From contig OZ116700.1 in assembly GCA_964199315.1 (NCBI GenBank), forward strand, positions 10,106,001 through 10,170,000: a DNA stretch of 64,000 nucleotides, given 5' to 3'. Origin of the DNA: Orbicella franksi (lineage: Eukaryota). The position numbers and the translations under genes are program-made. Each line of letters starts with the position of its first letter. The stretch's first letter is position 1. The notes below the pieces were generated by a model that worked only from the letters and a program-made list of their open reading frames with translations, did no database searches and had not been told where the DNA came from. Below are positions 13,101-60,800 of the stretch, in pieces.

Positions 13101-14983
13101 CAGTATTGTAAAGGAGCTGGTGGTGCTAAGTATCCATGGAAACGATAAGAATGCGAGACAGCTAAAGTCCTGTAAATGGTCCTTTTTTTCTCTCCTTGGA
13201 AGCGCTATTTAAAAAGAAAAGGCTTCAACATCAACAAAAAATAAATATGTTTAGAAAAGTTTTCTATTCACGTGTATTTTGAAGAGGAATCGAAGGGATG
13301 TCACCTCAGCTTGGAATTGGAGTAGTCAGAGAAATAACAGTGAACGCATCCTTGATTTTAAAAACAGGTACCAAAAATTCACCTTCAACTCATAACTTAT
13401 TCATTGCTTGTGGATCGACGTTTGAAAGTCTCACTAAAACCGTGCGTCTTGCGATCGTAAGGGATATAATAACAAGTGAGTTTTGAAACAGGCAAATATT
13501 GAAAGAAGCCGTCTGCTGTTAGTCGATTCAACACTCAGGTGGGAGAGAGAGGCGAGACCAGTGTTTAGAACGATTCTTTATTTTGGTGTGAGATGAAAAG
13601 CCTGTGGTGGAAATAGATTTGCTAGTAAAGGGTAGGTAACGGGTTGAATAAGGAACTCTCCTCCGAAATCCCTAGCTTGTAATTACAAGGTAGGGATTTC
13701 GCATCAGAACATTGTTCAGTTTTACAACTGATAACTCTAGTCTGTTTTCCGGTCTTGTAATACAAAACGAAACGAGAAGTTTCTGTTAAACACACATTTT
13801 GGTGCTCCAAATTGTGAACACAAAAGAGAATGCGATACTCGGGAAGAGAAACCGAAAAGTCCTGATAACATAGCTTGCAAAAAGGGGAACCTCGGGGAAA
13901 TATGAACAAAATTTGACTGAAGATCAAACTTTGCAAGCTAACTTTCCTAAAAAACAAATCGAACATTACGATCAATGTGTCAGAAGCTTTAAAAACTTTA
14001 AAACCATCAACAGGTCATCTTTTCTCTGGTATATTCAAAGTGAATTTGAATTTTACCGGTACCACTGTCTGATGTTACTTGTGGTTTAATTTTTCTTTCT
14101 GCTAGTTTTCTAATTCGTTTGACGAGTGAAAACGCACACGAACAAGACTTAAACCAACTTTTTACTATAATTTTGGCGTCTCACTTCAAAATGTTTGATT
14201 TAAAAAATGAAACATGAATATTTTATACGCGGTAGATGTTATTCATGCAAGAATCAACGCTTTCTGAAAACGTTCAGTGAACCATTTTAAATTTTCGCTT
14301 GGCTATAAAATAATGGTAAAATAGCTGCAAAAGTAACAATAACCCCATCTACCATCATTTTTGTATTTGCCAAGCTTTTGAAACAGCTTAGAGGAAAATG
14401 CCAATGCAGAGATTCCACATAACGGTCAAATAAAACATTCTAATTGTCCTGATTTCAACATCATTTATCCACTTTGGTGTTCGCCTCTAATGGTTTGCAT
14501 TTTGGATATTATGAGATAAATTCTCACTGCACTAAAACATCTCAACGGGTAAATATAACGAAAGAACTGAAAAAAACTTAGTATTCAACTAATTCTAACA
14601 ACTGACAACTGAAAACGTGCGTTACAGTCCTCTACATCTTCGATAAAAAAAGTATTAGCTTGGTTTGTTGATCGCATGGGCGGGACTATTTAACATCACC
14701 AATAAACGTGGTAAATATCCTCTTTTATTCTACGATTAATTTCTGCTGAGCGAAAAAAAGGAAATTTGGGACGAAAAGTCAAAGCAGAAGAAAGACTATG
14801 TTTTATTCTTTATGATATTAGACATACATTTTAATAACATTATATTACTGTGGGTAAATGCGCGAATTAAGTCGTTAAAACACGATCATGATAATTATTT
14901 CATATACGGACTATAAGTTTACAGTTTTTTAAAATAGTCTAAATGCTGATATTACTTTTTTTCTTTATAGGGGACTTCGTATC

Positions 14984-17900
14984 ATGAACATTACCACAAC
15001 CTTGGCATGGCTAATTACAGCCCATTTTATCCATGGGCTCATAGGTGAGCTACACTCTGCAAGACCCTCCAAAAGGCCCTTTTGCACTGTGATGACCGAA
15101 TAACGGTATGAAATCCGAGCGGCAATGCCCTCAAAAGCGGAAGAAAAAGAGTAAACGCCTAGGAAAAAAAATGAAATTTCTTACTGAACTTAAGAGCATG
15201 ATATGGTAAATTAGATACATTCACCAAAATAATAATAATAAAAAAAGATGAATCTATGACTATTTCATTTTGTAAAAGAACGACATCTACCCTGTACAAG
15301 GTTACTCTCATTTTTACGTTTGCGGATGATGCCCCTAATGTCCAAATATATTTTTAATGAAAGCCATTGAACAGCACTAGCATGTGGTGATACTCGGCTC
15401 ATATCTGCAAAATTAAACTGGCTTGGGAATTTTTTTTTTTTTTTTTGTAACTCTTTGACATTTAGCTTTATTCTAACTAGCCACTCTCCCGCGTTCTTCT
15501 CCTTATTCAGGTCTTCCAATAGACCGAGAGCTTCTTCGTGTTAAAAGGAAGGGAGGAGGAGAGTTTGGCAACGGCGAGGAACTCATCAACAAAGTAAGAA
15601 GATCACAAGACGACAAAGAAACTGAGATCAGGCACAAAAGACGATTCTTTGCCATAGACACCACTGAACATGAATCACAGGAAAGTTACAAAACCAAAAT
15701 GGAGGCGAGATCGTCCCGTTCATCCCGCGAGGATAATGACATCACAGCAAAACGACCCGAGAGATTTCGACTCAGAATTCACAAGAGAAGCCAAGACGAA
15801 AGCTCTTCGATCAAAGGCGATACCATTTCTGGTTCCGGCCAACAACCAGAACCAGGCACTTCCGGTTCCGGGTTATGGAGCGGACCTTTGCTGCACTCAA
15901 AGAGAGACGATAAGCGAAGCATGAGTTCAAATTCGCTTGACAGCCTCATTGCAACATTACGGGCGATTAGCTCTCTCGCTCCAGAGGATAATGACAATTC
16001 AGATAAAGAGATCGAGTCCTCGGGATCTGGTTTATGGCTAAAACCAGACAATGCAATCGATGATAAACTGCCGCAGTTTTTCAACGAGGAAGCAAGCTCT
16101 GGGAGCGGAGAAGACGCCGAGAAAGCTCTGAACATGTTGAGCGAAACGGCGCAAATGGAACTAAGCAAAAATGGGGATGAAGTCAGCAGTGACTCAGCAG
16201 TAAGCGAACCAAGGGTTAGCGGCGAGGAGGAGAAGCCAGATAACGGCGGGAAATTGTTCCGACGTGACGTGAAGAGTGATTCACTGGCGGACGATTTAGT
16301 AGCTGCCGCTGAAAACGACGATAAAAGTGATGATTCTGAACAGGAGGATCATCTGTCTCCCTCATCAGGATCAGGAGATGAGAAGCAGGAAGCCGAAGAT
16401 GAAATGTCGCAACAGCCAGATGAAGACAAAATTAAAGAACAACCGGACATAAAGACAACACGAGCGTTAGCGGATGCCCTGCTCCCTAACGCGTTTTTTC
16501 GCGTGAAGAGATCGTCTCAAGAAGACGCCATGCTGCTGTCTGAGAGCAACCTAGGTGAAAATGACGCCTTGGTTAGCAACAGTCTTGTAGCGCGCTTTTA
16601 CCGCGACCAAGACGCCCTCGCCGACGCACCGGACATTACGGAAGCTTCGGTGGCATCCCTTCCTAGCGAGACCGAAGCTGTTTCCAGCCTCGATAAAAAA
16701 GTAAAGCCTGCAAAACGAGAATCGTATTACGATCACTCCGGAGACTTCTCAGAACCGAGAGTTGTGTACACAAGGGAGATAACTGAGGCCCGCGATCCAA
16801 TCATAGAGCGGCCAGCAGTCTACTCACAGAGTATGGACGAGAGCGAAATGGATTCGAGTTTTGGAGGCGATGATGATGATGACGATGACGCTACTCTGAC
16901 GATTCATGAAAGAGAGATTAGAGAAGATGGTACGGTGAATAAAATAGAATATTCAGTGATTGTTTGTACAAGCAAAGAAAAATAAGGGACAATAAGGGAA
17001 TTTAAAGATGCGGGAATGTTTGTGAAAATGTAAACTTAGATTGTTCACCATAAAAAATAATCGATGGACTTCGCAAAGCGTCTGTGAAGACCAAGTGATT
17101 TTTGTCTGTGGGTCGCCTGTTTGGTGGGCATTCGTTAAGTCAATGATTAACCCTTAGTATTTTGACAAACTATTATAGCTTGTCAAAGTAATAAGCCTCA
17201 CTATTCGTACAAATGTATAGCAAGAATAACAACTATAACATACTACCGTCAAATTTCTATTTTTACAAAAGGGAAATTGTCAGCATTCAGGGGCGAAGCC
17301 ATGATATTTTTTTAAAAGGGGGGGGGGGGGTCACTCTGTGTGAAAGTGAGGGTACTCACCGGATTGTCGTGTCGTTTTCGCCACCTGTTGTAGGTTGTTT
17401 GCTTAAAAAAGGCATACAAAGGGGGGAGGGGTCACGGGGAAACTCCAGGACCCCCCTAGCTACGGCCCTGGTAGTGGAGTGGAAACAGTGCCTCAGTACA
17501 AAAGGGCACTCACTTACATATTTGTTATACATGGATATCTTATATCTATATAGGATATGTTGGTTGCTACGAAGACAAGTCTCCTGACCGCGATCTTCCC
17601 ACAATTCTTTCGGTGCCAAACCTGACTCCTGACTCGTGCCGCAGTGCATGCCAGGGAGCTGGTCACGCGTATGCCGGAGTGCAGTATGGGTATTTGTGCC
17701 GGTGTGGTGACTCGTACGGTAAATACACCAAGGTATCGGATGAGGAGTGCAATGCGCTGTGTGTTGGGGATCGTGCTCAGAAATGTGGTGGATTCTGGAG
17801 GAGTGCAGTATTCACGACCGGTAAGTGGGATCTACCGCTTTTCAACACTTATGTAGAGCTCCATCGGGTCAGGAAAAATACAGCAACAACAAGCTAAGAT

Positions 17901-19449
17901 TCTGCAACTTGGAATGGTTCTTGGTAAACCAAATACCCTCCACCTCCATGATTAATAAATTATGATCCTTCCCTAATTTAAGTTATCAACGGGTTTAACT
18001 ATTGACCACAACATGCCAACCGAAAAATGGGATTAATATTTACTGTGAAACATCAGTCTGAATAGGTGTTAGCGTCGAGGGTTCCATGGATAAAGTTTAA
18101 ACTTAAACCCGAAAATTGCCAAATGAAGGGCGTTTAATTGTCACTTTTAAATGAGGGTCTCAACGAGTTGAAATGTTAAGGGTTCAATGGACTGTCAACC
18201 TTTATAAGGTCGCCACCTTAATGTGACCTACTTAAGGACAGCAAACCATCTTTTTTTCCCCGGGTAATGTTCTTTGCGGTTGCGATGAATACCATAATGC
18301 TATAACATATCTTCCCCTCATTTTCCAATACACAGCCGGAGCAATGCAACCCTCAAAGCGCGGAAACTTCTTCCACATTGAAAGCGTTCAGCCAATGACA
18401 GAAGGTATGGTGCTGACATTTCAAATCTTTTGTCCACAAACTAGAAATTACTAGGTTTATAAAATTTATTTTTTCTGCGACGTTCGGTTTTCATTTTAGA
18501 TATCTTCGACATACCCCGAAGTGAAATCGCCTCAGGGGTGCACGACGCACAGGAACACCAGTCATCAACCATACTAACAGAAACCTCGCATGTGACAGCC
18601 TCAGCACCCCTAGCTCCTGAGCTATCAGCATCACCTGCCTCGGAAGCTACCACACCCGAGTCATCTGGAGCATATATTCAGGAGATACACCGTGAAACAT
18701 CCCTACAAGAATCTCCAGTGCCATCAACTCCGGCGCAAACCGCCAAACAGGAAGATTCTGCTGCGCATGCCTCTGGTGACTCTACTCCGCTGACTCCTGA
18801 GTCCGAACCTGCAAATGACCCTACAACTGCGCATACTCCCGACGTCGTATCTGCGCCAGCGATCTCATCTAAGTCTCCTTCTCAAGCCTCTCTCTCATCA
18901 GAGTCTAAACCGTCTCTAGATCCGCCCACTGTAACCAACGACCAGCCACCGAAAATTGTTCGCCCTGGGAACAATCAAGCACCCCAAGGTACCCATGTGA
19001 GTCAGCTTGTGTATCTGCATCAGCAACAAGACATTTTATCCAAGCCGACCCCGAAAGCAGTCATCGCTGTGGCTCCTGGGAGGGTGAAAGCGGGAAGTAA
19101 GTTCGTAAAGTCTTAGATGTTAGCAAAAGCTGAACCACATGTGTAACCAAACTGTACCAGACTTCCGTGTGGGCTAATTTGCAAACCTCTATTCCAAAGG
19201 TCTTAGAAGGAAGAATGTTGACTGAACAATAAATTCTCTCGTGCCATTTTGTTTTGTTTTGTTTTGTTTTTTTGGTTTTTTTTTCAATTAAATCTTTGTT
19301 TTTGTTTCACTTCCAGCTATAGCATACACAGGAACAATCAAGCTAAAACAGAGCTGGCTGGATCAGTTTGAGGATGGAAATAGTGCGGAGTCAAAAATTC
19401 TAACGGGGAATATCGAGCAGGCGGTAAGATTGACCGTTTCAATTCCTTC

Positions 19450-19518
<69 letters not shown>

Positions 19519-22281
19519 GATACCCTCAAACACCATTTGTTTCACAAACATTACGCATCTTATTTTCATCTCCTGCAGATGTTTCGCATTTTATATTTCA
19601 TATCATTTTTATAATTCCTTGGTACGTTGATTTATTTCATTTTCATTTTAATGTAACTTATTTAGTAGTATTAGTACCGAAAAGCCCCCATGGGGAGTGC
19701 TAATAAAATTTGTATTGTATTGCATTACATTGCATTGTATGTTGATTAATTGATTAGGCCAAGAACAAACGTCAACCTTTAAATGAGCCGCAACGTATGA
19801 AAATGCGCAAAAACACGTTTTTGCTCATAAGTTCAACGAGTGACCACGGGCAAAATGTCATTCATCTTAGCGCCAATCAGTAACACAACCATCACCAATT
19901 TCTGTTGCCCATGGCTAGGCGTGCTGCCTTTCACAGCAAAAAATTCATCTGAGCTAATTTTTTTAATTTGAATTCGTAGCGGGATTCACGAGTGTTGTGT
20001 GGTTTCTGTCTGGTGATTAGCAGTTTTTCCCTGACGATAGAAAAACTCCAAAGTCTATTAATGCCAAGGGTGTTGGTTACGTACAAGTAAACTAATGACA
20101 TTCATTTTGCTCCACAGTTTAAGCGTATTTTCAAGAATGAGCCCAAATTTGTTAATGCTGAGGTGGTAGGCTTTAGGTAAGACACTACTGAGAAAATCGA
20201 TAGAGTTTGCATGAAATGAAATACCATATGTAATGCTGCGTGGTGCGGCGATGTAGTGTAATGAGACCACTTCATTGCAGTGCCTTGTATTAATTTCATG
20301 TGTTGTTGGATGTTTACTAAAATCGTAGAGCTGAAAAAAAAAAAAAAAAAAGAAACACCCTGCATTTTGATTAGCGACATGCTACTCGGTTGAGAGAACT
20401 GACAACAAGTCACCACAAAAAAAAAAAAAAACCTTGAGATTGGGTTACTAAATACGGGAATTAAAATCTATCTCATATTCGGAGATCCAGGTATCCGAGT
20501 TAGGGGAAAGTCAAACGGATGAAAGCAATGAGAATAAAAGTTGGTAAACGTTTGTTCGCACCGCTTTCGCCCGTTTAACGTTTACATACTTAGTTGTAAA
20601 GCTGATAAGACGTTAATCATCAGAATCAATGGGAACGCATTCGGATTCTCATTCGATTTACAGGAATCAGCTATTTATTTTCAATTTGCTCCATGCCTTA
20701 AAAGCAAACAAATCAACAAACCACAACAACAACCTCTATGTATAAGTTCAAGTTTGAGATCGTTTGACAACTGTACTTCAGCTTACTGTCGTGTTTATGG
20801 AGATTGCTCGCGCACATAAACCAACGCAACGTCTTAAAACAACTACATTTCTACACTTATCCATTCTATTCTTTAGGGAGGGGCTGGTGAAGCACAACCC
20901 TAACACTATTCGAAAAGTCATAGCACCTTTCATCTTAACGTTCAAGAATGGCGTCAAAGGCATCGAAGAAAAGTTGAAGAACATGGTACAGAACTTGGGA
21001 AAACTGGACGACATGCCAGTCTACAAAGATTCCCTTCAAATAGCTGGTAAGTAAACAACAGATCGTGATATTAGAACGCAAGTAAATTCAGTTTCATTGG
21101 AAGCCCTTTTTCGATCACTTCTTGAGCCTACGGGTTTAGTCAGTTGATAAGAAACATGACATATATTGTAGCGACATGCTCACATGGCAAATTTTCCGAG
21201 TCAACAATCTTTAAAGCAGGATTTCTTTAAGCTAGCGTTGCAAAATGTTCCACTGAATGAACGAAAGGAGGCAGAGGGCGAGGCCGAAAAAGCCTTTTTA
21301 GACCCAGTGTTAGTACCTACAAGTTTCTTTACTTTTTGGAGATATTAATGGAAAATAATTTTCTTTTGGTTTGAAGAATACGGCCATTCACCAGCTGCAG
21401 AGAAGGCAAAGACTGTAAACGAGATGAGCAAAGCTAAACACGAAGACCAGGATGAGAAGCGAAGTGCTGTGAACGTTCCAAGTAAGAAATGATTAGTTTA
21501 AAGAACGTCAGCAACCAGTTTTGTTAATCAAAAATTGACGAAACAGCGTAACGGTGCTACTTTCAAAACATGGATTCTTGCTGTGAGGCAAAATGCCAGA
21601 TTTCCACTTAATTTCCAACAAATGTCTAGTCCTCGTTGGTTCAAGGTTTGAAACGTTTTGGGGTTACCTTTTCCCTACACCTTAGTCACTCTAGCTCCAA
21701 ATATTCGTGTAGACAGACCGATTCCTATCAAAGGTATAATTCTAGTAATATATCAAACACGAAAGACCGTGTTTGACCACATTTCCAAACACCGAGGAGA
21801 GAGTCGAAAATACGACGCGCAGCAGAGTTGACGAACTTTGATGTGTTTGGATATGTGGTCAAACACGGTCTTTCGTGTTTGATATATCTTCTCAATCGAA
21901 ACTAAAACTAAGGAGTAAATGGAGAATCAAAATCGTAAAAATGTATGTTAATTAAGATCAGATATCCAAACACCGTCAAGGTCCTGATTTCCTGAGTTTG
22001 AGAATGTAATTGCAAAACCTCATAACACCCTGTCGTATGAGCTTCTGGCGCACGCCTGACGTTGCCTGGTCATCCTCCACCGTCTGAAACAGATCGTGCA
22101 GTTAGTTAGTGTTTCGGAACAAATGAATTTAGGGTCCGTCCACACGTATCCGGATATGTTGGAATCTGCAACTTTTTCTTTCCGGATACGGCTTCTGTCT
22201 ACACACATCCGGCAAAAAAGTTGCGGATTCAAAAATATTCGGCAGCGATCCGGATATTTCTGGATCCGCTCTCCAGAGTGG

Positions 22282-22316
<35 letters not shown>

Positions 22317-22571
22317 GCAACGAATCCGATAACGTATGGACGGTGAATCCGGATATTTTTGAATCCGATGACGTAGCAAAATCGTGTCTAGTCTCTTACC
22401 GAACAATAAACCAATATGGCGGTACAACGTGTAGGCCTAGTTTCTCCAGAGTGATTTCGGATAGCATTGGATGCGTGTGGACGGGGCCTTAGACTAATTT
22501 CAGATCTCTCTTTTTCAGACGGTGGCGTTGATCCATTTCTTAAAGGCATCTTTAGTCAAATTTCGACGTGA
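14984..22571 (+). CDS. Secreted acidic Ser-Gly-rich protein with WSC domain, mucin-like Pro/Thr/Ser stretch and SEA domain, 9 coding exons, about 974 aa
   Basis: Exons 14984-15044 (MNITTTLAWLITAHFIHGLI signal), 15511-16929 (acidic, SGSG motifs, KR/RR sites), 17554-17820 (WSC: YVGCYED..CRSAC..YAGVQYG..CRCG..C...C.G...KCGG), 18336-18404, 18500-19096 (PTS-rich), 19317-19423 and 20782-21046 (SEA: YTGTIKLKQSW..D.NS..IEQALTVVF..FREG..FILTF..GKLDDMPV), 21395-21481 and 22519-22571 (stop). Joined length is 2925 nt and all phases match. The last two exons are less certain. Confidence 0.82.
17288..17469. mobile_element. Short MITE in intron 2 of the WSC-SEA gene
   Basis: Imperfect TIR caggggcgaagcca ... 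tagctacggccctg around a G-rich interior. Confidence 0.55.
19450..19517 (+). repeat. (AAT)n microsatellite
   Basis: About 22 uninterrupted AAT units in the intron that splits the SEA domain. Confidence 0.95.
21748..21887. mobile_element. Foldback MITE segment
   Basis: Approximately 45-bp inverted arms: atatatcaaacacgaaagaccgtgtttgaccacatttccaaacac and its reverse complement. Confidence 0.8.
22132..22488. mobile_element. PIF/Harbinger-type MITE
   Basis: TIR gggtccgtccacacg ... cgtgtggacggggcc, flanked by TTA on both sides (3-bp TSD typical of Harbinger). Confidence 0.8.
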
Positions 22572-57800: not shown

Positions 57801-60800
57801 TTTTTAATAATATTGCATGCCCTTCTCCCTTGAGAGCAACCAAGAATACAACAAGGTAGTCCAGTTGTTTACACACACAATTAAATAGCCAATCTTTTTT
57901 GTTTCATCTGTGATAGCCCTTTGCCTTTTACAGTGCAGGAAAGTAATGCTTGCCTACTCACCAATGCAAGTGTGAAATGCATCGGGCAAGTACAAATCAT
58001 TGATCATTCGCCTGTTTGGCGAGCATGATTTTCTTTTTTGGGAAATTGTAAAACATATGGTTTGTGAATCATTGGGAGATTTTTTTGGAGAGGGGAGGCA
58101 TTTTCTGGGTAAGTGAAATTACACTGGGCGACTGCATTTTGAGAGTTGCTCACCTGAATGGCGAGTGCTGTCAAAATTTAGTTTCCAACACTGCTTTTAG
58201 AGCAATTGGTTGATCATTTACGAAATATCAAGCCCTTGCATTTGGAAAGAAATTTTACCCTGGAACACCAAGTTAAAAAAATGAACTTTGCAACTTTGTC
58301 AACTAGATAATGGTCAAACAATATCATGTAGCATGCATGAATGATTTCAAGAGTTCAGACGATTTCTGTATTTTGTTTCTCCTTTCCATCATTTTTAAAT
58401 GAAAATTAATCAAATTACAATGCTTTGCACATGCTCCTGAAGAGGAAACTAGTGCCAACTGAAACAGATATCACTTTTGAAAAATTATCCATTCACTAGG
58501 AGTTCTTGATTTCTGGTGTGGTTGTTCTGAGTTTGAGCCAGATGATCATTCCGTGCTCGTTGGTTAATAAAGCAAGTAAAAATTGTCAATGCCCATGTTT
58601 TCACGAGAGATGTCTACCTTGGTTTTGTTTTAACTTTACTGAAGTGAAATTTTTAATCATGTAAACACAGTAGCAAACCTCGGTAAATGGCAGCAAAATC
58701 AAAAGTAAGCCAACCTAGGTTTGTTGACAGTTGAACGCCTCATCAGGCATGGTATAACTCAGAGACCAACGGTAACCGAGGAAAAGCCAGCTGAAAAGCA
58801 GACATTGTCGCAATATCTTGGCACTAAGTGTTCACGCGAGCAGCACGTACCGTAAAGAGGAGAAAAATAGACAAAGATTCCTCTTAATGTAAGTAGGTTT
58901 CAAGTCAACCGGCAAAAAATGCTTAATAAACTCAGGTTTAGGCAAAACCTGAAAAAACCTGAAAGAGCCATCAGTGAAGAATGCCTTCATCTCTCAACTC
59001 AGAAATTGATTTCAATCCTTGGCGGTTCTGTCTGATGAGCCCGAACCTGATGAAGTCAACAATATATGGAAGCAAGTGTCATTCACTTTGACAGAGAGCA
59101 GCAAGGCATGTCTAGGTTTTAAGAAGGCAGTAAAGAAGAAGAAGTGGATAAAGCCAGCAACCTTAAGGTTGCTAGAACGCTATAAGATCCAGTACAGAGA
59201 GGCTGACCAAAGTGTTAAGAGAATGGCAAGAGCCGACAAATGCGCATATATTGATGAACTTGCTAGGCAGGCAGAGAATGCAGCTAACAGAGGAGAGCAG
59301 GGAAAGGTTTACAAAATCACAAAACTGGTATGTGGCAAGTATGGGGGCAGAAAGGTAGCCCCTGTTAAGAATTTTCAGGGTAGACTGCTTACCACTGAAA
59401 GAGAGCAGGAGGCTTGTTGGGCAGAGCACTTTAAGGATGTCCTCAACACACCCCCACCCACAGTTGAAGCTGACATTCAAGAGGCTGAGACCGACCTGGA
59501 TGTGAACACAGATCCTCCAAACAAGCAGGAAATCATTGCAGCCATAAAAACCTTAAAAAAACAACAAAGCTTCTGGCCAAGACAACCTGAATGCAGAGCT
59601 TTTCAAGGCTGACCCTGAACTTTCAGCAAGGATTCTACAGCCCCTGTTTACTGCAGTGTGGGAGCAGGAGAGAGTGCCAGATGACTGGACCAAAGGTACC
59701 ATCATAAAGATCCACAAAAAAGGTCCACTAAGCGACTGCAATAACTGGCATGGCATCACCCTCCTATCCACCCCAAGTAAAATCCTGGCAAAGATTATCA
59801 TCCAACGAATCTCCAGTGCAGTAGATCAGCAGCTCAGGCAAGAACAGGCTGGATTCTGCAGGGGTAGGGGTTGTGCAGATCAGCTATTCACACTGCGTAA
59901 CATCATTGAGCAATGTACCGAATGGCAGAGGCAGCTGTACATAAGCTTTGTAGATTTCCAAAAGGCTTTCGACAGTATACACAGAGACAGCTTGTGGCAC
60001 ATACTTCGAGCCTATGGTGTTCCTCAGAAGATTGTCCAACTTATACAGAGCTTCTATGAAGCCTTCACTTGTAGCGTAGAGAACAGTGATATCAGTTTTG
60101 AGGTAAAGACTGGTGTCAGACAGGGTCTGCACATGTCTGCACTGCTATTCAACTTAGCCATTGATTGGGTGATGCGCCGCGCTATGGAAGACCATCGCAG
60201 GGGCATCAGGTGGACCCTCTTCTCCACCTTAGAGGATCTAGATTTTGCGGATGATTTAGCTCTGCTTTCTCACACCCACAGCCACATGCAAGAGAAGACC
60301 AGCCTTTTAAGTAAATATGCACACCAGGTGGGACCAAACATCAGCCTCACCAAAACAGAGGTCATGACCCTTAACATCTCTAACCCTCAGCCCATCAAGG
60401 TGAATGGAAAAGACCTCCCAATGACCGATCAGTTTAAATACTTGGGCAGCATCATCAGGCAAGATGGTGGTGCAGGCTTAGACATCCAGAGCCAGCTAAA
60501 CAAAGCCAGAAACACCTTCAGGATGCTGAACAATGTGTGGCAGTCGTCACAGTACAGTACACATACCAAGCTCAAGATCTATCAGAGCTGCGTTCTGTCT
60601 ACCCTTTTGTATGGGTCAGAATGTTGGCAAATGTTAGAAAGTGATCTGGGAAAGCTGTCAACCTTTCACACCAAAGGTCTGTGAAAAATACTTCGCACCT
60701 TCTGGCCTCAGACCATTTCCAACAAGGATCTGCTTTCGCAGTGCAAACAGGAGGACATGGGCACTATTTTTATGCAACGACGCTGGAGGTGGATTGGCCA

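Follow-up and report, generated by a model that had tools for sequence, protein, structure and literature searches.

In the stony coral Orbicella franksi we describe one single-copy, expressed gene, located on the + strand of a 64,000-nucleotide (nt) stretch of genomic DNA (assembly GCA_964199315.1, contig OZ116700.1, positions 10,106,001 to 10,170,000; hereafter the window), which is low-GC eukaryotic DNA and from whose first letter all positions below are counted. The gene encodes a product of 968 or 978 amino acids (aa), in which a predicted signal peptide is followed by a long acidic region rich in Ser-Gly dipeptides, a WSC domain, a Pro/Thr/Ser-rich stalk, an SEA domain and a short C-terminal tail that differs between two isoforms. 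We interpret it, with moderate confidence, as a secreted, convertase-processed glycoprotein of the proteoglycan or mucin-like kind.

Gene structure and transcripts

A chain of GT-AG exons was first built from the open frames, and RNA was then placed on positions 16800-22700, two runs contributing assembled poly(A) contigs and a third raw reads. The runs in which the stretch occurs carry the label coral metagenome or metatranscriptome. This RNA contains the GT..AG joints 16929/17554, 17820/18336, 18404/18500, 19096/19317, 19423/20118, 20176/20877, 21046/21377 and 21481/22519, confirming the joints of this chain except that 17820 is spliced to 18336. A direct splice from 17820 to 18500, which would give a 945-aa protein, is ruled out by the extra exon seen in RNA at 18336-18404. 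Two metatranscriptome contigs, L008 (4071 nt) and L009 (7611 nt), obtained via proteins of the same 90% cluster, each carry every exon on one molecule, including the joint 15044/15511, which is also present in the RefSeq and Joint Genome Institute (JGI) proteins P0020, P0080 and P0084. Aligned exon by exon, both contigs are 95-100% identical to the window. A fusion of separate genes is ruled out by the presence of every joint in RNA and by the two contigs holding all exons, and the elements listed in the original prediction do lie on a single + strand gene. The nine exons and roughly 974 aa given there need amending: with the additional exon at 18336-18404 there are ten coding exons, encoding 968 aa in the form that includes the cassette exon described below. 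The proposed span of 14984-22571 is likewise right in its ATG at 14984, but the transcript has a non-coding exon from 13414, and 22571 is the stop of one isoform only.

The transcript runs from a 5' untranslated region (UTR) exon at 13414 to a 3'UTR reaching at least 23695. The non-coding first exon (13414-13631, +) is matched at 100% identity by L008 and L009 from 13414 or 13430 to 13632, from where they jump to about 14971, with GT at 13632-33 and AG at 14969-70; 13414 is a lower bound for the start of transcription and 13631 an approximate 3' boundary. The first coding exon (14971-15044, +), present in both contigs, holds the ATG at 14984 and the signal peptide of 20-21 aa and ends in phase 1. 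It is followed on the same strand by the acidic, disordered exon (15511-16929, aa 21-494), the WSC exon (17554-17820, aa 494-583), a 69-nt linker exon (18336-18404, aa 583-606), also present in L008 and L009, and the stalk exon (18500-19096, aa 606-805). The SEA domain is divided over three + strand exons: 19317-19423, which encodes strand 1 and the first part of helix 1 (phase 1 in, 0 out); 20118-20176, ending at the VVGFR motif (phase 0 in, 2 out); and 20877-21046, with EGLVKHNP (phase 2 in, 1 out). Phase 1-1 holds for each of the four exons that encode the acidic region, WSC domain, linker and stalk, and for the three SEA exons jointly; such phases are the classical signature of shuffled extracellular modules.

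A tail exon (21377-21481, +, aa 917-952, phase 1-1), with a conserved KRS dibasic site, is common to both isoforms. In L009 it is followed by the cassette exon (22519-22607, +), which carries its own stop (22569-22571) and ends the 968-aa protein with NGGVDPFLKGIFSQIST, and then by sequence from about 22713 onward; the match of another RNA contig to the window also ends at 22607. In L008, 21481 is joined directly to about 22713 and the contig reaches 23695. The last exon (22713-23695, +) encodes KKPYTLQLFLMKDFFGKKKRAAQVLTH when the cassette is skipped, with a stop at 22793-22795 that gives 978 aa, and is otherwise 3'UTR, its end at 23695 being a lower bound. Support for the joint 21481/22713 comes from L008 and the RefSeq models, the placed RNA ending at 22700. 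Both isoforms translate cleanly from the window. One unspliced RNA contig (21376-21773) reads past the donor at 21481 into the intron, a sign of intron retention or else of a third, minor end. Within its own genome the gene is single-copy; its WSC exon alone has paralogues, the best at 46% identity.

The introns of the gene contain several repeats. The last long intron contains a nearly perfect hairpin of 140 nt (21748-21887), with 50 nt between its 45-nt arms, which are 98% complementary. Whereas the exons of the gene have RNA word depths in the tens, those over 21725-22118 reach hundreds to thousands, with many loose ends leading to unrelated sequence, and the hairpin looks like a very high-copy repeat of the miniature inverted-repeat transposable element (MITE) type, transcribed at many loci. 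The same intron holds a short element at 22131-22489, with 21-nt inverted repeats at its edges and a 33-nt poly(A) run (22282-22314); RNA depth is raised (about 590) at 22316-22512. Between SEA exons 1 and 2, a perfect (ATA)x22.7 microsatellite (19450-19517) yields spurious poly-Ile, poly-Asn and poly-Tyr open frames.

Domains and conserved motifs of the predicted protein

The signal peptide (aa 1-21) gives the protein its one strong Kyte-Doolittle peak: the 19-residue windows that rank first to sixth in hydropathy all fall within it, and the full-length model has a helix at residues 4-17. The signal peptides of the orthologues are more canonical and end at a G before LP, just ahead of the conserved LP-I/V-D/E-R/K-ELLRVKRKG. 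Outside the signal peptide no window reaches transmembrane-level hydrophobicity, and the C-terminus, predicted to be disordered from aa 918 to the end, has no hydrophobic end of the glycosylphosphatidylinositol (GPI) type. In the full-length orthologues of six species there is equally no transmembrane helix or hydrophobic stretch beyond the signal peptide. In both transcript isoforms the stop codon is followed by 3'UTR. A missing transmembrane exon is ruled out by hydropathy, by the full-length contigs and by the helix-free orthologues. The protein is predicted to enter the secretory pathway and to be released rather than membrane-anchored, in agreement with the earlier statement that no anchor is present, and Pfam, composition and hydropathy also bear out the proposed assembly of signal peptide, acidic region, WSC, mucin-like stalk and SEA in one secreted protein.

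The acidic region comprises 472 aa on one exon, with an isoelectric point (pI) of 4.5, 23% Asp+Glu, 14% Ser and no Cys, and a DDDDDDD run stands directly before the WSC domain. Pfam finds no domain in this exon. It is predicted to be disordered, with a predicted local distance difference test (pLDDT) below 50, except for four short helices; the full-length AlphaFold model from which this comes has a mean pLDDT of 39 on a shallow alignment and was used as a disorder profile only. Short motifs conserved in the exon are LLRVKRKG, RHKRRF, KMEARSSRSSREDNDIT, DDKLPQFF, RFYRDQ, EPRVVY, IERPAVY and IHEREIREDG. Between corals and anemones they form islands of very high conservation in otherwise fast-evolving acidic sequence, namely LLRVKRKG, R-x-K/R-R-F, KM-x-ARSSRSSRED-x-D-x-TA, S-G-x-W, DD-x-LP-x-FF, RFYRDQ, E-x-RVV, IIE-x-PA-x-Y and IHER-x-IREDG, the last of which adjoins the WSC domain directly. 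The DNA of the acidic exon is 97.7% identical to Orbicella faveolata-like transcript contigs, against 100% for the SEA and tail exons, and the acidic exon carries 19 of the 27 amino-acid differences from the O. faveolata protein, a strong rate difference within one gene.

Two kinds of site are over-represented in the acidic region. Ser-Gly occurs 13 times, where 3.65 are expected, and SGSG five times; none of 20,000 shuffles reached either count. The sites read SGSGED-AEK, SGSGDEKQEAEDE and, twice, SGSGLW, and the orthologues covering this region all keep 8-12 Ser-Gly. Where a protein is unstructured, Ser-Gly sequons serve as targets of xylosyltransferases (PMC10570366). Because the sequons lie in disordered acidic sequence and are conserved, the N-terminal half may be read as a glycosaminoglycan-bearing core. 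The second kind is the furin-type site R-x-[KR]-R, present three times where 0.31 are expected (P = 0.004 in shuffles); LLRVKRKG, which contains one, does not vary among the five full-length coral and anemone sequences that were aligned. The N-terminal 470 aa hold 13 dibasic pairs, and the 'polyprotein' of the original prediction is no more than an inference from conserved dibasic sites.

The WSC domain (Pfam PF01822) scores 68.7 bits against a cut-off of 27.8 and covers profile positions 1-82 of 82. All eight Cys of the protein lie within it (residues 498-571), and the closest solved sequence is the WSC domain of Kremen-1 (PDB sequence match, E 2.8e-12). The linker has a conserved GNFFHIESVQP motif (G-x-F-x-H-x-ESV-x-P), kept in anemones. 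The stalk that follows is 199 aa long with 37% Pro+Thr+Ser, is predicted to be disordered and is poorly conserved apart from a YLHQQ motif; a repeat search found no tandem repeats in its DNA.

The SEA domain (Pfam PF01390; aa 806-917) scores 36.3 bits against a cut-off of 26.4 when scored on the O. faveolata protein (P0078:790-930), which is free of mismatches to the window protein between residue 800 and the C-terminus of the 968-aa form, and it was matched in all seven orthologues scanned. As the domain is split over three exons, the first SEA exon of the window alone reaches 13.9 bits. A dedicated model of the domain (pLDDT 76; predicted template modelling score, pTM, 0.76) has the strand and helix order b-a-b-b-a-b-b. 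In a Foldseek search of the PDB its top matches are the MUC16 SEA domains 1ivz and 7sa9 (template modelling, TM, score 0.58-0.69, E 3e-5 to 5e-4), together with those of TMPRSS6 and a mouse transmembrane protease. The top 30 Swiss-Prot structural matches are nearly all known SEA-domain proteins, and the structural matches overall include MUC16, TMPRSS6/7/11, IMPG1/2, MUC1, enteropeptidase and agrin; a profile search against PDB sequences gave the SEA chain of TMPRSS11D (E 0.02). The self-cleavage motif of MUC1 type, G before S-V-V-V, is absent: just after the VVGFR motif the window has EGLVKHNP in place of the G-SVVV of cleaving SEA domains, and the aligned site is GF-R/N/S-E/K-G-L-V-K/R-H in seven of seven sequences. 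Since Leu replaces the nucleophilic Ser in every orthologue, autoproteolysis is not expected.

The two C-terminal tails differ in character beyond the shared tail exon, whose pLDDT is below 50. Inclusion of the cassette ends the protein in the short tail given above, and skipping it gives a tail that reads KR-SAVNVPKKPYTLQLFLMKDFF-G-KKKR-AAQVLTH. In Montipora and in both anemones the corresponding tail has PYT-L/M-E/Q-LFLM-K/R-D, with a KR or RR site before it and KKKR, KIKR or REKR after it, and the cassette-skipping tail is the ancestral one. Both tail types are annotated as isoform pairs in Orbicella, Oculina and Stylophora, and among Montipora proteins, from which it follows that the switch is older than the divergence of complex from robust corals. 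In four of four corals the basic run has a Gly before it (FFGKKKR), which is lacking in the anemone tails. Such a Gly before a basic run is the classical amidation-type signal. There is no Gly-dibasic signal elsewhere in the protein and no repeated peptide copy within it.

Distribution and competing interpretations

The 968-aa form is collinear with O. faveolata XP_020607296.1 without a gap and with 27 mismatches (97% identity), and the 978-aa form differs from XP_020607295.1 at 28 positions, which places the window in Orbicella or a very near relation; RefSeq names these O. faveolata proteins 'histone acetyltransferase KAT6A-like'. Full-length orthologues with both WSC and SEA are found in Oculina patagonica (81% identity), Stylophora pistillata (70%; UniProt name 'Xylosyltransferase oxt'), Montipora foliosa and M. 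capricornis (named 'uro-adherence factor A-like') and the anemones Actinia tenebrosa (38%) and Exaiptasia diaphana (37%), with partial gene models in Actinostola and Desmophyllum. The remaining name given to orthologues in RefSeq and UniProt is 'uncharacterized'. The three specific names are artefacts, as Pfam finds only WSC and SEA. A KAT6A identity is ruled out by the lack of MYST acetyltransferase or PHD domains in this result, and that name probably reflects low-complexity acidic similarity; xylosyltransferase oxt is ruled out by the lack of a GT14 'Branch' or Xylo_C domain, the name being explained by the WSC domain that arthropod oxt contains; and a uro-adherence factor is excluded on the same Pfam result.

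Every named match is scleractinian or actiniarian. Searched against 1.84 billion representatives, the acidic exon retrieved 13 relatives only, and a search with the SEA and tail region gave four matches, all orthologues. Searches with the acidic exon, a partial anemone protein, the SEA and tail region and a 17-sequence profile found no homologue outside Hexacorallia, within the limits of word index and length and with Nematostella, octocorals and medusozoans not directly checked. No other protein combining WSC and SEA appeared in the SEA-region search, the profile search or the ESM Atlas clusters. The view that the gene is lineage-specific thus stands as far as these searches reach, as does the view that its architecture matches no named or described family, Pfam giving only WSC and SEA and the ESM Atlas no cluster with both.

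We found no mention of the gene in the literature under its names, accessions or domain combination. In the texts on coral skeletal proteins the following terms are absent: the Stylophora accessions, WSC, xylosyltransferase and proteoglycan from the S. pistillata skeletal-proteome paper and the supplements examined; the Stylophora accessions and 'WSC' from the supplements examined of a Stylophora/Oculina comparison; 'WSC', 'SEA domain' and OS493 tags from the Desmophyllum skeletal proteome; and 'KAT6A', 'WSC', 'SEA domain' and the O. faveolata accession stem from the Orbicella skeletal protein paper. These negatives mean absence from text, not a re-search of spectra. The gene models themselves are already public, and RefSeq predicts both isoforms in O. 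faveolata and other corals. With public models, two known domains and a known logic of sequons, stalk and SEA, the protein is not categorically new, and we regard it as a lineage-restricted, modular, proteoglycan-like protein.

In the interpretation that we favour, the signal peptide would be removed and furin-type convertases would act on three conserved sites, RVKR, RHKRR and RVKR, which suggest the loss of a 12-residue propeptide. These cuts may also split residues 65-354, with all five SGSG, from a WSC-stalk-SEA fragment, and the 978-aa isoform may be cut in addition at the KKKR of its tail. The five tandem Ser-Gly sequons of the acidic region would receive heparan or chondroitin sulfate chains and the Pro/Thr/Ser stalk O-glycans, giving a hybrid of proteoglycan and mucin-like glycoprotein that would belong to the extracellular matrix, glycocalyx or mucus. 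The WSC domain would bind a carbohydrate partner, and next to the stalk with its glycans the SEA domain would form a stable, non-cleaving module of the kind known from agrin, perlecan and the interphotoreceptor matrix proteoglycans, with the conserved cassette exon switching the C-terminal tail.

Several points weigh against this interpretation. All post-translational steps, with their glycans and cleavage products, are read from the sequence. A Ser-Gly sequon is required for the addition of a glycosaminoglycan but does not by itself ensure it, and around two of the five SGSG sites acidic residues are few. The stalk, with its modest Pro/Thr/Ser content and no repeats, is unlike classical mucins; the full-length model is poor, even the WSC domain being poorly folded in it; and we know of no animal WSC domain with a known ligand. 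The many conserved dibasic sites would suit a precursor packaged into granules at least as well as a matrix protein.

This last point leads to an interpretation that we consider unlikely but take first among the alternatives, that of a granin-like or prohormone-like precursor in the regulated secretory granules of gland or neurosecretory cells. Here the N-terminal half, being acidic and binding calcium, would bring about condensation, convertases would release PYTL-x-LFLM-K/R-D as an active C-terminal peptide, and WSC, stalk and SEA would act as carrier. The pI and Asp+Glu content of the acidic region and its 13 dibasic pairs fit such a precursor, as do the enrichment of R-x-K/R-R sites and their conservation across the coral-anemone split. 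So does the 978-aa tail, where the motif lies between a conserved KR or RR and KKKR, KIKR or REKR, with the Gly of the four corals, and where a conserved cassette exon removes precisely this tail. However, the predicted peptide is known from sequence alone and is not repeated, the Gly-dibasic signal is missing from the anemone tails and the rest of the protein, a WSC domain, a 199-aa stalk and an SEA domain are atypical of peptide precursors, and the five conserved SGSG sequons would be left unexplained.

A dual-purpose precursor restricted to hexacorals strikes us as distinctly improbable. Here furin-type cleavage would give three products, the first a glycosaminoglycan-bearing acidic fragment with the five SGSG, between RHKRR and the second RVKR, and the second a lectin-stalk-SEA fragment. 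The third, from one isoform only, would be a C-terminal peptide of about 20 aa containing PYTL-x-LFLM-K/R-D and amidated in corals, which the cassette common to complex (Montipora) and robust (Orbicella, Oculina, Stylophora) corals would turn on or off. If so, a glycoprotein of the matrix or mucus would double as the source of a secreted signal.

We see little chance that the protein is instead a component of cnidocysts or spirocysts or is associated with venom, that is, a hexacoral glycoprotein or proteoglycan of stinging or adhesive capsules, or one co-secreted with venom and mucus. That the family was found only in Hexacorallia, the group that has spirocysts, would agree with this, and chondroitin proteoglycans are known in cnidocyst morphogenesis. 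A review (PMC6627431) reports 'WSC domain proteins' of unknown function from venom milked from the anemone Stichodactyla haddoni. However, nothing links those venom proteins to the present gene family, corals have many other WSC genes, and the protein has no cysteine-rich or minicollagen-type capsule motif, its only Cys being the eight of the WSC domain.

Least probable of all is the skeletal-organic-matrix role put forward in the original prediction, in which the Asp/Glu-rich half and the poly-Asp run would bind calcium carbonate and help to control aragonite deposition, in the manner of coral acid-rich and secreted acidic proteins: the protein is acidic, predicted to be secreted and has its DDDDDDD run before the WSC domain, the gene is in every scleractinian examined, and SEA and mucin-like modules occur in biomineral matrices, but full-length orthologues with the same motifs exist in the skeleton-less Actinia and Exaiptasia, and one in Actinostola as a partial model, making a skeleton-specific role unlikely; its 23% Asp+Glu is well below that of highly Asp-rich coral skeletal proteins; and the absence from the skeletal-proteome texts given above also disfavours it.

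Corals and anemones rely on secreted glycoconjugates for the mucus layer, the mesoglea, contact with microbes and symbionts, and adhesion between tissue and skeleton, and to our knowledge very few of the core proteins concerned have been identified. The present gene is seen in poly(A) RNA runs of several studies and has kept its architecture since the split of stony corals and anemones. Being single-copy, expressed and conserved in architecture, it is therefore a concrete candidate for the core protein of a proteoglycan or mucin specific to this lineage, and its five SGSG, three or four convertase sites, lectin-type WSC domain and C-terminal isoform switch can all be tested. Meanwhile the public names KAT6A-like, xylosyltransferase oxt and uro-adherence factor A-like are wrong and will mislead enrichment analyses in coral transcriptomics.

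Genomic neighbours and comparison with known systems

Directly downstream lies a convergent WD40-repeat gene (24875-34060, -; also L001, 35076-36416). L009 runs from the 3'UTR into the WD40 exons, and either the two genes overlap at their 3' ends or the assembly is chimeric. A WD40 gene has the same position and orientation in Actinostola, and this microsynteny may be conserved between the coral and Actinostola. Large open frames further away in the window match the folate-receptor family (3115-3855, -), a fibrinogen C-terminal domain (7773-8309, -), a secretin-type seven-transmembrane receptor (46898-48124, +), a reverse transcriptase of a retroelement (59656-60684, +) and an EF-hand protein (63066-63635, -); these five have no evident link to the WSC-SEA gene.

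Among known proteins, agrin and domain I of perlecan resemble the predicted coral protein in being secreted and in having Ser-Gly clusters in acidic unstructured sequence, Ser/Thr-rich stretches and a non-cleaving SEA domain, and the sequons follow the logic described in PMC10570366. Structurally, the SEA model also matches the SEA domain of agrin (rank 24). However, no sequence homology can be detected beyond the SEA fold, the coral sequons lie about 500 aa upstream of SEA where those of agrin and perlecan are adjacent to it, and the coral protein has none of their follistatin, laminin-G, LDL-receptor, Ig or EGF modules but does have a WSC domain, which they lack. IMPG1 and IMPG2, secreted or shed glycoproteins, similarly join mucin-like stretches to SEA; their SEA domains are among the best structural matches (ranks 2, 14, 16, 21 and 26), and an IMPG1 cluster is among the ESM Atlas structural neighbours. 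These are vertebrate proteins with 13-15% identity to the coral protein in SEA, and they differ in having two SEA domains and EGF-like domains, and in IMPG2 a transmembrane helix, where the coral protein has one SEA, one WSC and no EGF.

The SEA fold is also shared with MUC1, MUC16 and TMPRSS11-type proteases, but these are membrane-anchored, and MUC1 self-cleaves between G and SVVV, whereas the coral protein has EGLVKH at this site and no helix. The 8-cysteine WSC domain is common to Kremen-1, WSCD1/2 and arthropod oxt, whose clusters carry WSC, but the coral protein lacks the kringle and CUB domains of Kremen, the sulfotransferase domain of WSCD and the GT14 Branch and Xylo_C domains of oxt. 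Lastly, the N-terminal half is like the granins (chromogranin A/B and the secretogranins) in being acidic (pI about 4.5), predicted disordered, rich in dibasic sites and free of Cys; it has no sequence similarity to them, no granin motif and no granin Pfam hit, and the WSC domain, stalk and SEA domain of the coral protein have no counterpart in granins.

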